Source: Paramoeba atlantica (taxonomy: Eukaryota > Protista > Discosea). Taken from it: 64,000 bases of DNA. The DNA lies in assembly GCA_977017575.1 (NCBI GenBank), contig CDRNVI010000044.1, forward strand, positions 682,001-746,000. The letters are read 5' to 3'. The notes under the pieces are model-generated. The model had not been told where the DNA came from. It saw only the letters and a list, made by a program, of their open reading frames with translations, and searched no databases. Within the stretch, counting starts at the first letter, position 1. Each line of letters starts with the position of its first letter. Shown one piece after another: positions 3,511-51,202 of the stretch. Both the position numbers and the translations under genes were made by a program.

Positions 3511-4834
3511 CCGTAGACCCCCCCAGTAATCGATTTTGTAGAATCGATTTTGTAGTAGAATCGATTTTGGGGCGAAATGGCCAAATCCTTATTACTGGGG
3601 GGGGTATGCTTTTTGGGTGAGAAAGGACTTTTTTTTTGCAAATAATTGGGGGGAAGAGTACGAATTCTAACTTTTCTTTTATACTACTACGACTTTCCTA
3701 CTTCATTTCTTAACATTCCCGTATCTTACTCACTTTTTCCCCTTAACGCGTTTCCACCTACCCGCTTTCCCGTTAACGACTTTCCACTTATTCACTTTCC
3801 CTTTCCCACTTTCCCTTTACCCACTTTCCCTTTACCCACGTTCCCTTTACCCACTTTCCCTTTACCCACTTTCCCTTTACCCACTTTCCCTTTACCCACT
3901 TTCCCTTTACCCGTTTTCCGCTTAACTTTTTCCCCTACCCCCTGTCTCCTTTTCCACTTCCCCACGACCTCCAAATCATTCGCGCAAGAAGATCACTAAG
4001 CAAGGTGCAGATCGCCGGGTCCGGAAACAACTTCGAAACCCACCTACCTCGCACTTTGTTTTACTCACTTTCCTACTTTCCCCTACCCAACTTTTCAACT
4101 TTTCAGGGAGGGTATGGTCTCCCTCAGCTTCGTTTCACCCGGACTGCAGGTGGCTCCCCAACCATTCGCGCGTTCCGGACCGGGTTCTTCGACCTTTACA
4201 CGGCCTGACTTGTGAACCCTTTCCTTGTTATACGGGAGGGCGCAGGCGCGGGCCTGTGTCGACAGCGACACGGTCACGAAACAGGATGCTGGCCGACGGG
4301 GAGGAGATTCACTACCCGTGTACTACCTCACTTGGGGTACCTAGCCCTCGCGAGCTAGGCGTGAGCATAGACTCTGTCGGCCCGACCAGCACCCGTCCTG
4401 CATACCATGGCGTCTCGCTCAGGAGTTCTGAGCCCGGATGGCCTTACTGCCCTTCCAGGGGCGTTTTTTATTTGCAAGCAATCAAATTAGCAATTTCATG
4501 TTTTGGAGCCCAAAACTAGCAATTCGATCTCCCGTAAGTATAAGAACAATAATAATAAAAATAAGCAATCCAGGCCCAATCCATTCGCGCGTTCCGGACC
4601 GGGTCTTTCGACCTCTCCACGGCCTGACTTTTTTTTTGTTCATGAGCGCGTTGATTTTCAGCCCGTCCAACCCCGCAACCGCGCCATTCGCTCCCTCGCA
4701 ACCGCCCTCACCCCGCCCAAACACCCCCTCCCCGCTCCAACGACCCTCCCGAGCCAAATCCTTGTTACTGGGGGTCAGCCGAAAAAGGGCCAAATCCTTG
4801 TTACTGGGGGGGTCTATTACTGGGGGGTCTACGG
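3511..4834. mobile_element. TA-flanked TIR element (CCGTAGACCCCCCAGTAAT termini), non-autonomous
   Basis: TA-ccgtagacccccccagtaat at 3511; attactggggggtctacgg-TA at 4834; internal ~50-bp direct repeat at ~4161 and ~4581. Confidence 0.8.
3794..3912. repeat. 15-bp minisatellite (ccactttccctttac)n, about 7 units, G-rich on the minus strand
   Basis: Tandem units read directly from the sequence; gives the spurious FPLPT/GKVGK ORFs. Confidence 0.95.
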
Positions 4835-4846
4835 TAGTATGTCATA

Positions 4847-5456
4847 CTGTGCCCCCCCCTATAATACGGACAGATTTTTGGACTTTGTCCGTATTAAAGG
4901 GGAGGGGTACTAAAGATGAGAAAATGATTGATGAGAGTTTCTTTTGATGCAATTGGTGAAAGAGGGCGATCTGTAGGGAAAGTAAATTTTACGAGCACAA
5001 ACCAGACTAAAGCGGACGAGGGAGATACTCAATCACAGTCCGGTTTAACATTCCGGGGGGAATGTTAAGTCGTGCTGAGCCACGAGTATGTATTCTTAAG
5101 GAAGAGCATTGGTTACGATAGAAAGTGCCGCGGTAAAACTTATTTTTTGGAACCTCTTATGACGGCCGCACATGGGCGCACCGCAAACCAGGTTTTTAAA
5201 GTCTTATACGGTATCACTTCTGTAGCCGGCTACAGATCTCAACGTAGGACGGACTTGGGGCAAAAGCGACCACTCGGCTGACAAACATCCCTTTGAGTCG
5301 TGCTCTCGAACAATGAAAATCGAAAAAAAGAAAATAAAATGTAAATCGAAACCATATATCGAAAATTTTCGAATTTCTTTCCAAAACAAATTTCAAAAAA
5401 ATCCGTATTAAAGGTGGGGGGATCAGGGGGGTCCGTATTAAAGGGGGGGGTCACAG
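4847..5456. mobile_element. TA-flanked MITE (CTGTG-C7 termini)
   Basis: TA-ctgtgcccccccctataatacgga ... tccgtattaaagggggggg tcacag-TA. Confidence 0.8.
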
Positions 5457-11769: not shown

Positions 11770-12903
11770 TTATTTAGTTTTTGATCCATGCTGTGGTTTC
11801 TTGGGAACATATCCCACATCGTATATGTGTTCTTTGAGCCAATCCCTCCGTTCATCAATCGGTTTGACTAAACCACACCCTTTGTTACACCAACAAAAAG
11901 ATGAGTCATCGATATTTTGTAAGTGTACATTTATTTCACTATCAAAGTTGTATTGGGGTTCTGATGCAAGCAAACCATACACTGCAACAGATACAATCTG
12001 AACGGCATCCTTTACCCACGTAATATCGTGGTCCGTTCCATGAAAAAAACGAAATTTATCGAAATGAGCGAAACAACGCTCGATTCTTGAACGAATCCAA
12101 GAATGCATGCGGTTGAACCGATCCTGGTGTTCATCAAGGCAACCTTTGCGTGGTGCCTTGAATGGAACAAAACAGTGGTTGCAACCCACGTATCCTAGAT
12201 CCGCCAAAAACATTTCATCTTCATGATGGTCAAAAAGAAATGTTCCGTGCGTGATTCTTTCTTTATAAATTTTCGCATCATGTACACTGCCCGGAACGGG
12301 TCCGCGAAAAAAAATAGGGACTCCGGCAAGCGTAAGCCAGAACTCCACTTTAAAACAGTGTTCCCTGTGCTTGCCGGAGTAAGTCGCATCTCTATTTCTC
12401 ATTTCCTGAGAGGCTTCGTCCCATACGTCCCGCGGTTTCCTTGCACGACATGGGATTGTCGTGACGTCCATCATACATGTCACGTCAGACATCCAAGATA
12501 CCCCATGCTTGAAACGAAGTTTCGGATTCATTAAAGCACGAGAGCGGCAAAGATCAGCGATGCGGCTAAAGTCATTGCGGAGAGTCCTGATGGATAGAGG
12601 AGGAGTTTCGGGAGCAATCCACATGGGCTGTAAATCATACAGTTGTTCCCATGTGCAGTTCAAAGCGCACATAGCTAAGGAAGAGCTAAGGCGTCTGAGA
12701 TCAGTGTCCGTGGCGACAAGAGGACTTGCTCTCTGTAGCTCAAGAAAAAAATCTGTGAGTTGCTCTCTGGTAATGCCGTACATGATAGAATTGCAGGATA
12801 AAATAACGCCTAGAGAGAAAACAAAAAGTAAGATGACATTCATGGGTAGGATACCTAACTTATTCATGATACATATAAGATGACATTCATGGGTAAGATA
12901 CAT
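11770..12903 (-). mobile_element. DDE_Tnp_4 transposase (PIF/Harbinger-ISL2EU/IS5-like), uninterrupted ORF
   Basis: MDVTTIPC, YSGKHREHCFKVEF, GPVPGSVHDAKIY, LADLGYVG, PFKAP and FNRMHSWIRSRIERCF; no TIR found by eye. Confidence 0.88.
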
Positions 12904-49896: not shown

Positions 49897-50022
49897 TAGG
49901 CAAAACCAGTACTATAAAATAAATTCTAGTTCACTTAGCAGATTCTTCGTCTTACAAAATCGAACGAGGTCAACAAATTTGCAGAAAGTAAATTAAACGT
50001 TCTAAATAAGTGATATACACTG

Positions 50023-51041
50023 GGTGGATTGTCAATGTCAGTGCAACAAATTGTCATACTCAGTGCAACAAAATAATAATAATTGTCATACTTAGCGCAA
50101 AAAAAGGTTAATTTCTGCATAATACACTTCATATACTAATTTCTGCATAATTCACTTCATTCACGCCAAAGTACAAAAGATTATCCGAAAACAATCGTAA
50201 AGACATGCAAACGATGTTTGAAAGTGGCACCACGAAGAGGGAAATTGCCCGATCGATTGATAAGTCGCCAACAGGAAAAGAGGATAAGGCACGCAGCAGG
50301 AAAAGAGGTGGGCAATACCGTTCTAGCCGTGCCCATCGTGTTGCCAAGAGACAACTGGTTAATAAAGGGACCAGACCACGTCTAATTCGAGCCAGTCTTG
50401 TAAAAAAGGGTAAAGACCCGTCTCCGAAAGCTTCACAGCCCGGATCAGGTTGCTAATACACTTGTTGTCGGATCACAAGGTTCACCATCCAATTCCACAA
50501 TCTATCTGTTTGTTCGTCGAGACAAAGACAATGGGGGGAAGATTCACAAGTGCCTCCGGATCCGGGGACCGTACTATACATGAAAGCAGTAAGTTGTATA
50601 GCCGTAAGTTGTATAGCCGTAAGTTGTAAAGCAGTAAGTTGTAAAGCAGTAAAGGCGAAGAGTTCATCTCTTTACTAAAGAAACGCGTTATGTTGTTCTG
50701 TCAATATCGACTACAGTATGCATCTCCAGCTACTCCTTTTTTCTTCTCCAAGGAGACTGTGCAGCTAACCAGTGCCATCTCGTGCCGTCTTGTGCCAATT
50801 CATGCCAACCAAGACTTGCTCAGTCTCCAGGGAGACTGTATTAATTTTTTTTCTTAATCCATTATTTCTTTCTTAACATGTCTCATACAATCCCGCGTCC
50901 GTTCGTGGTGCTGTCCGACCGAAAAAACAGTGTTACACTGAGTACGCGAAAATCCTGACATCCGGAACACATCCATATTTTTCTCATTTTCGTTGCACCG
51001 AGTATGACAAAAAGGTCTTGCACTGAGCATGACGATCCACA
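50023..51041 (+). mobile_element. IS30-like DNA transposon with TIRs, short TSD and decayed transposase
   Basis: Left end ggtggattgtcaatgtcagtgcaaca; right end ttgcactgagcatgacgatccac; flanks CTG/CTG; transposase relic 50163-50583 reads KYKRLSENNRKDMQTMFESGTTKREIARSIDKSP..GQYRSSRAHRVAKR and, after a frameshift, VKTRLRKLHSPDQVANTL..SNSTIYLFVRRDKDNGGKIHKCLR. Confidence 0.82.
50584..50651. repeat. 15-bp tandem repeat (aagcagtaagttgta variants) inside the IS30-like element
   Basis: About 4.5 units visible, at the point where the transposase frame breaks. Confidence 0.88.
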
Positions 51042-51202
51042 CTGCAACAAGAAAGAAAGAGCAAAACGCTAATGATCAAACAAAGCAGACCTAAAAGAAA
51101 AATGTACGCAACTATGTTCAGATGTCGAATAGTTATCAGATAGCTTGAGTTGCAGCATAGGAACAGTAAAGAGGATAGTGCAAGCGCATCAGACCAAGCA
51201 AG

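Follow-up and report, generated by a model that had tools for sequence, protein, structure and literature searches.

Introduction

IS30 is a textbook family of bacterial insertion sequences, whose members are compact (about 1.0-1.2 kb), consist almost entirely of one open reading frame (ORF) and carry one inverted repeat at each end. The Escherichia coli element has 26-bp inverted repeats, produces a 2-bp target duplication and moves by a copy-out-paste-in pathway through a circle in which the two inverted repeats abut (PMC9333248). Links between a bacterial insertion sequence and a eukaryotic transposon, of the same kind as the one reported here, are represented by IS481EU, IS3EU, ISL2EU, Merlin/IS1595, Zator/ISAzo13 and Tc1-mariner/IS630. 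Zator/ISAzo13 likewise makes 3-bp duplications, and the term IS30 is absent from the list of prokaryote-eukaryote transposon links in the 2023 IS481EU paper (PMC10045372). In the literature that we searched, there was no report of IS30 in any eukaryote. Besides retrotransposons, Merlin was the only DNA transposon reported for kinetoplastids as of 2021 (PMC8101967).

Here we analyse an element at positions 50023-51041 of a 64-kb stretch of DNA (64,000 nucleotides; hereafter the window, to whose numbering all unlabelled coordinates refer). This element and its relatives share terminal inverted repeats of about 25 nt and target duplications of 2-3 bp with E. coli IS30 and the IS30 family; unlike that family, they reside in a eukaryotic nuclear genome and have a host-like GC content. 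Their transposase is an IS30 equivalog and not an IS481 protein, which sets them apart from IS481EU. The eukaryotic elements do not meet the criterion of compactness that holds for the IS30 family, a deviation that concerns their architecture and not their descent. We consider it very likely that the window copy is dead and non-autonomous and belongs to an IS30-family lineage of DNA transposons residing in a nuclear genome, that of a kinetoplastid-like eukaryote.

Transposase remnants in a eukaryotic gene cluster

As the initial annotation had stated, the element is inserted between two eukaryotic host genes, an LRR gene and a gene for a fidgetin-like AAA-ATPase, which belong to an intronless gene cluster running on one strand. 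It is located 161 bp past the stop codon of the AAA gene and 126 bp ahead of the start codon of the LRR gene, with its coding remnants antisense to both. All but one of the window ORFs of at least 250 amino acids (n = 23) are on the minus strand. The 23 minus-strand ORFs that we scanned are uninterrupted, and 16 of the 23 have Pfam domains, mostly typical eukaryotic ones; among the encoded proteins are an ABCC-type transporter, an AAA/Vps4_C ATPase, cactin, a DHHC palmitoyltransferase, Rpc34, TYW3, a ZNF598-like RING protein, a Cid1-type poly(A) polymerase and XPG. We call the host kinetoplastid-like on the grounds of this gene arrangement (the polycistronic layout) only. A scan of the whole window against Rfam gave no match.

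Two pieces of the transposase remain in the element. The N-terminal piece (window:50151-50453:+, frame 3) matched Pfam HTH_38 along profile positions 1-35 of 44 (E value 2.6e-5); its 24.3 bits fall slightly short of the gathering score, which is 27. The second piece (window:50404-50580:+, frame 1) matched the NCBIfam model NF033563 (transpos_IS30) with an E value of 2e-5 and 24 bits over profile positions 45-99, below the cut-off of 80 bits. Both had been recognized in the initial annotation as a frameshifted N-terminus with the IS30 helix-turn-helix (HTH) and an SPDQVA block of IS30 type, and the profile search, in which IS30-specific models and no Tc1/IS630 model matched the window peptides, bears this out; the frameshift is due to a 1-nt insertion (Table 1). 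Since the scores of the window copy itself are under both curated cut-offs, its IS30 membership is established via the 87-91% nucleotide identity to the longer copies described below. The start codon has changed from ATG to ACG (50163-50165; other copies have T at 50164). At about 50269-50308, a local duplication of 25 nt (CA[A/G]CAGGAAAAGAGG twice) has taken the place of the recognition-helix codons, for which other copies keep the canonical sequence.

Searching the 64-kb window by tblastn with full-length relatives showed that only transposase residues 2-140 survive and detected no further IS30 relic. The DDE triad is absent from the window copy, having been deleted. Two supposed coding relics were chance readings: the peptide LFTKETRYVVL (about 50663-50695) and the SVTL frame (about 50930), the latter regarded as the end of the transposase, both are located in the 3' non-coding region, past the original stop codon (TGA, 50581-50583). 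The genuine ERKSRFVVL block belonged to the segment that the window copy has lost and is retained in L003, a copy from another assembly.

Intact transposases and related copies in the same organism

When 1.84 billion representatives were searched by phmmer with the 101-aa N-terminal piece, only nine matches were obtained, all of them short ORFs from ENA, and every match that we traced was on ERZ24900291, an ENA assembly from the same organism as the window. No bacterial IS30 was found directly by this search. Intact proteins were reached stepwise, from the N-terminal piece to P0003 and from P0003 to P0012. P0012 is an intact protein of 315 amino acids, and its cluster mate P0135 is intact as well; thus, intact transposase genes, for which the initial annotation had proposed a search, do exist. 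Both proteins matched the full profile of NF033563 (positions 1-267) with 245 bits, and P0010, which comes from the longer copies to which the window copy is 87-91% identical, reached 112 bits (cut-off: 80). The HTH_38 scores were 48 bits for P0012 and P0135 and 46 bits for P0010, with P0012 and P0010 matching over positions 1-44 of 44, and the Pfam rve score of 30.7 bits was just under the gathering score of 32.6. In 20 aligned relatives, two of the catalytic residues, D174 and D228, do not vary, and the third, E262, is almost constant. With the IS481 model, the transposase scored 59 bits (cut-off: 224), and no IS630 match was among the profile matches listed for P0012.

The copies fall into at least three subfamilies. 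Subfamily 1, to which the window copy belongs, comprises L004 (1442 bp), L006 (1447 bp), L001 (1201 bp), L003 and the truncated L007, which is inside a retrotransposon. Subfamily 2 (L002, L089 and L090, about 1425 bp) has members that are 96.5-98.1% identical to one another, and L005 represents a third subfamily. Read depth inside the window element is about ten times that of its flanks. Full-length family members measure 1.42-1.45 kb, and not about 1 kb as had been assumed for the family, and encode a single HTH_38 plus DDE (rve-type) transposase of about 315-325 amino acids. Their inverted repeats open with GG(T/C)GGATTGTCA...; those of L004 are 25 nt long and 88% complementary. In both eukaryotic subfamilies checked, a leader of 141-163 nt and a trailer of 310-330 nt leave about 66% of the element coding, and each end has three copies of the inner inverted-repeat motif.

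L004 and L006 require one frameshift each to be read through, and the search of the protein collection brought up no intact ORF of subfamily 1. The two intact subfamily-2 ORFs (P0012 and P0135) differ at nine synonymous and five non-synonymous codons, which suggests constraint on these ORFs. The subterminal repeats of subfamily 2 (L002, 4860-4950) contain polypyrimidine runs followed by AG, e.g., TTTTCTTATCATTTCCAG; it may be speculated that such runs could act as trans-splicing acceptors upstream of the transposase ATG.

Ends of the element and their motifs

The 1019-bp unit with inverted ends proposed in the initial annotation was confirmed. Its ends are imperfect inverted repeats of 23-26 nt, with arms of 23 nt (50024-50046 and 51018-51040) that are 83% complementary, and it is flanked by a 3-bp CTG duplication. 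The boundaries are supported by read contigs from other copies, which start matching at 50021-50023 with unrelated flanks on the left side and diverge at 51039-51041 on the right side. The features of the element are listed in Table 1.

Table 1 Features of the window copy and of its target site
Feature	Position	Strand	Remark
Target-site duplication, left copy, CTG	50020-50022	.	CAG in the allelic L003 (single SNP)
Left terminal inverted repeat, GGTGGATTGTCAATGTCAGTGCAACA	50023-50048	+	Tip GGTGGATT in common with bacterial sister insertion sequences
Three direct copies of the subterminal motif of about 20 nt, ATTGTCA-N3-TCAGTGCAAC	50028-50101	+	Starts at 50028, 50050 and 50082
Two 24-nt direct repeats in the 5' non-coding leader, TAATTTCTGCATAAT.CACTTCAT	50109-50160	+	Same pair in L004 and L006
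Remnant of the transposase N-terminus, HTH_38 and linker, about residues 1-80	50163-50400	+	
A run with 1-nt insertion, frame shifted	50402-50407	+	Gap in L004, L006 and L001 at aligned column 382
Second transposase piece, HSPDQVA...STIYLFVRRDKDNGGKIHKCLRIRG, about residues 80-140	50404-50583	+	
Junction of the 589-bp internal deletion	50568-50569	.	L003 has 4365-4981 at this point
15-nt tandem repeat right after the stop codon	50583-50652	+	4.7 copies
3' non-coding region of the family	50653-51015	+	Holds a lineage-specific insert
Three inverted copies of the subterminal motif	50931-51036	-	About 50931-50944, 50992-51011 and 51017-51036
Right terminal inverted repeat, ...TTGCACTGAGCATGACGATCCACA	51016-51041	-	
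Target-site duplication, right copy, CTG	51042-51044	.	

With up to three mismatches, the motif ATTGTCANNNTCAGTGCAAC occurs five times, each time at the ends of the element (three direct copies on the left and the two outer inverted copies on the right); 0.19 occurrences were expected, and none of 100 shuffles reached five. Together with the weaker sixth copy, the innermost on the right, this agrees with the earlier proposal that a core motif is repeated three times per end. The copies are conserved in the better-preserved L004 and L006, with three at the right end. Several transposase-binding motifs per end are known from the IR/DR ends of Tc1-like elements (Sleeping Beauty) and from the subterminal repeats of hAT, CACTA and P elements. 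The ends described here resemble them in having multiple motifs inside the terminal cleavage site, whereas the transposase family is unrelated. We presume that the subterminal copies are extra transposase-binding sites without a cleavage tip; binding by the HTH is an inference only.

The insert in the 3' non-coding region has a length of about 86-95 bp (50750-50844 or 50745-50839), is bordered by 16-nt direct repeats (TCTCCAAGGAGACTGT, TCTCCAGGGAGACTGT) and encloses a 19-nt inverted repeat. Apart from the window copy, L003 alone has this insert, and a read contig of another copy skips 50749-50845. The 15-nt tandem repeat has, counted by eye, about two units fewer in L003 (4990-5040) than in the window copy; within the family, this repeat is a site of the microsatellite type that changes fast.

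Transposition with 3-bp target duplications

The window copy and other subfamily-1 copies have the termini GGTGGATTG...ATCCACA in common, and the bases next to them are CTG/CTG in the window, ACT/ACT in L004 and TCA/TCA in L006; in the older copy L001, which has the same termini, they are CCA/CCT. The initial annotation had left open whether the window duplication was 3-bp CTG or 4-bp ACTG. As other copies with the same termini have ACT and TCA, the 3-bp reading is established, and the 4-bp one is ruled out by these common termini. Subfamily-2 copies end in GGCGGATTG...ATCCGGG and are flanked by CCT/CCT, GAT/GAT and TTT/TTT. For this subfamily, a 2-bp GG duplication could be ruled out, since GG is element sequence and the duplication is 3 bp long. 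Altogether, six copies have perfect 3-bp duplications of six different sequences, and two more copies match at two of the three bases, so that further copies of the end motif with different duplications, as the earlier reading had demanded, are at hand. L004 even provides an empty site: it was inserted into a minisatellite, in which four uninterrupted repeat units, serving as paralogous empty sites, correspond to the L004 flanks when these are fused around one ACT (two mismatches each; no such matches expected by chance). The targets were eukaryotic intergenic DNA, a retrotransposon and a minisatellite. Taken together, these data show a DDE-type insertion with a 3-bp staggered cut of the target.

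An HTH followed by a DDE domain, and several binding sites per end recalling IR/DR ends, could also point to Tc1/mariner, pogo or another eukaryotic cut-and-paste element whose HTH is merely similar to HTH_38. However, P0012 is recognized by the IS30 model with the score given above and has no IS630 model among its listed matches, the duplications are variable and not TA, the tree presented below puts the copies inside IS30, and the terminal tip is common to bacterial IS30 relatives. We thus regard an origin from such elements as practically ruled out and treat the copies as members of the IS30 family.

Loss of the catalytic core at the locus

In the second transposase piece, LRIRG (about residue 140) is followed directly by the final four codons (PYYT) and the original stop codon, owing to a 589-bp deletion with which the whole DDE catalytic core (from about residue 141 to the end minus four residues) has gone. 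The earlier statement that most of the DDE core is missing was thus correct, and we can now ascribe the loss to a single internal deletion, since L003 keeps this region. L003 represents the same locus in the ENA assembly, with the ABC transporter, the LRR gene, the element and the AAA gene in the same arrangement and flanks that are about 99% identical. Judged by its sequence, it is the allelic or orthologous copy of the window element. The L003 element is 1608 bp long, and its transposase region is decayed and complete, including LCERKSRFVVL and TYDNGTE; its DDE triad is present in decayed form. The window copy and L003 have four lesions in common, i.e., the change of ATG to ACG, the 25-nt helix duplication, the extra A in 50402-50407 and the 3' insert of about 86-95 bp. 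Because the same-locus copy L003 retains the 589 bp, we conclude that the deletion arose in place after the insertion.

No read contig among those listed bridges the deletion junction at 50568/50569, and one X1 contig runs on into the undeleted form. The deletion site is likely to be heterozygous, although this has not been shown, and a collapse in the assembly is not excluded.

The 1-kb form could also be a MITE-like, non-autonomous deletion derivative that has been amplified, and not a one-off relic. It does retain both ends and all six motif copies, and other deletion derivatives exist: in P0005, about residue 52 is joined to the C-terminus. Nevertheless, the in-place origin of the deletion inferred from L003 speaks against amplification, as do the contigs of other copies, which at 50567-50615 run into full-length sequence and none of which, among those listed, has the 50568/50569 junction. 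We therefore consider an amplified form very unlikely and the window copy a single relic. P0005 itself (99 aa, on a 132-kb ENA contig), in which residues 1-52 continue directly into a C-terminal WEKGAVENMNGL... block, is another internal-deletion derivative at a different locus.

The position of the relic so close to the LRR start codon and to the AAA stop codon, and its retention in both assemblies, would be compatible with a co-option, for instance for RNA-processing signals of the downstream LRR gene in the polycistron. Against this, the decay is of a neutral type, with indels, changes in tandem-repeat number and presence or absence of the 589 bp between assemblies, and no transcript on the element was seen in the one RNA run. 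Co-option is, in our view, highly improbable, and we regard the copy as a decaying relic. As an inert relic, it is useful as a marker, being an old insertion common to two assemblies with later decay in place.

Bacterial relatives

Outside the host organism, the nearest relatives of P0012 are IS30 transposases of about 317 amino acids with 42-49% identity; in reference genomes, they are found overwhelmingly in metagenome-assembled genomes (MAGs) of aquatic Verrucomicrobiota. We constructed a maximum likelihood tree (LG+C20) of 64 rows, six of which are eukaryotic. The six form one clade (support 100/100) with a stem of 0.6 substitutions per site, which joins a clade of 40 mostly Verrucomicrobiota rows (100/99). 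The sampled eukaryotic copies are therefore one clade within the bacterial IS30 diversity, in line with what had been expected. As the bacterial rows were picked by their similarity to P0012, a single acquisition remains an inference only.

We compared the eukaryotic copies with bacterial elements of this type. The 4.18-Mb Verrucomicrobiae MAG contig CAWCAA010000002.1 has four identical 1214-bp IS30 copies (L024-L027) that start with GGTGGATTCAGGG and are flanked by the 3-bp duplications CTG, ATA, GTT and TCC. L008, from a Logan contig, is a 1082-bp element with a 29-nt inverted repeat GGTGGATTCAATAAGCTAGTGCA, and L017, L031, L046 and L061 have GGCGGATT-type tips and the duplications GAT, CCT, GAG and CAT. 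These bacterial IS30s have the tip GG(T/C)GGATT and 3-bp duplications in common with the eukaryotic copies. In contrast to the eukaryotic copies (1.42-1.45 kb), these relatives are compact (1.07-1.21 kb), and L008 and L024, the two checked, have a single inverted repeat of 25-29 nt per end without subterminal repeats, as opposed to three motifs per end. Their GC content is 46-57% (56.7% in L024 and 45.6% in L008), whereas that of the eukaryotic elements is host-like (42-43%, compared with 43.6% for the window). The four identical copies L024-L027 represent an active bacterial relative and a possible reference for the sister clade.

Since IS30 is otherwise a prokaryotic family and the closest relatives outside the host organism are in bacterial MAGs, a bacterial IS30 misassembled into eukaryotic sequence, by contamination or by a chimeric join, had to be weighed. 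Both element-host junctions of the window copy, however, are crossed by read contigs of two independent public runs, X1 and X2, which speaks against a chimeric join, and the same insertion is present in the second assembly. Furthermore, at least nine copies are in eukaryotic contexts, six with perfect and two with two-of-three-base duplications, an empty site is available for one of them, the GC content is the same as in the host, identity to bacterial sequences reaches no more than 42-49%, and no bacterial gene was found near the element among the scanned window ORFs. Contamination is hardly tenable in view of these observations. The junction contigs, the second assembly, the duplications and the tree instead support the proposal of the initial annotation that this is a resident, eukaryote-adapted and horizontally acquired lineage.

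Proposed history and significance

The origin and the mode of movement of the family are inferred. The lineage would have come from bacteria by a single horizontal transfer. Movement would follow IS30 chemistry, which in bacteria is copy-out-paste-in via a circle with abutted ends; a circle pathway is undemonstrated here. The three motifs per end may be extra transposase-binding sites gained in the eukaryote. The history of the window copy itself is documented by the comparisons above. The element inserted, in antisense orientation and with duplication of CTG, between the genes for the AAA-ATPase and the LRR protein; afterwards its start codon, the helix for DNA recognition and the reading frame were lost. 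The 589-bp deletion also removed the catalytic core, in the window haplotype or strain only. With both ends whole, the window copy could at most be mobilized in trans, and it is presumably inert now.

With clear reservations, we favour the broader interpretation that the copies represent an undescribed IS30-derived superfamily ('IS30EU'), which stems from one bacterial acquisition by a bacterivorous, kinetoplastid-type flagellate, has at least three subfamilies and multi-site ends and is still active, as judged by the intact ORFs and 98%-identical copies. If this is true, IS30EU would be the first natural case for studying the IS30-type pathway, possibly copy-out-paste-in, in a eukaryotic nucleus. 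A resident IS30 lineage with duplications and intact genes would be a new link between the transposons of bacteria and those of eukaryotes. It would also give a dated example of the adaptation of a bacterial mobile element to the nucleus, in its composition, its longer non-coding ends and its multiplied binding sites, and would offer a natural system for the expression and function of a bacterial-type transposase in a genome that is transcribed as polycistrons.

Other mobile elements in the host genome

At all three loci with a clear host context (window/L003, L002 and L005), the transposase frame is antisense to the surrounding gene cluster. This placement fits the 'safe haven' idea raised for Merlin (PMC8101967), and three loci are too few to test it. 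The window contains another transposase gene of a different kind, an uninterrupted 377-aa ORF at 11770-12903 (-) with a DDE_Tnp_4 domain (PIF/Harbinger-type, E value 2.9e-19) that is oriented like the host genes. The mobile elements adjoining IS30-type copies include IS1595/Merlin-type DDE ORFs, a Tc1-type DDE_3 ORF, zf-RVT, and RVT_1 with a tyrosine recombinase (VIPER/DIRS-like); they were found at 152-1111 in L001, 8122-8252 in L003, 2334-2960 and 6347-6486 in L006, and 1-2895 and 4608-5867 in L007. Compared with kinetoplastid-type genomes, this genome is rich in DNA transposons.
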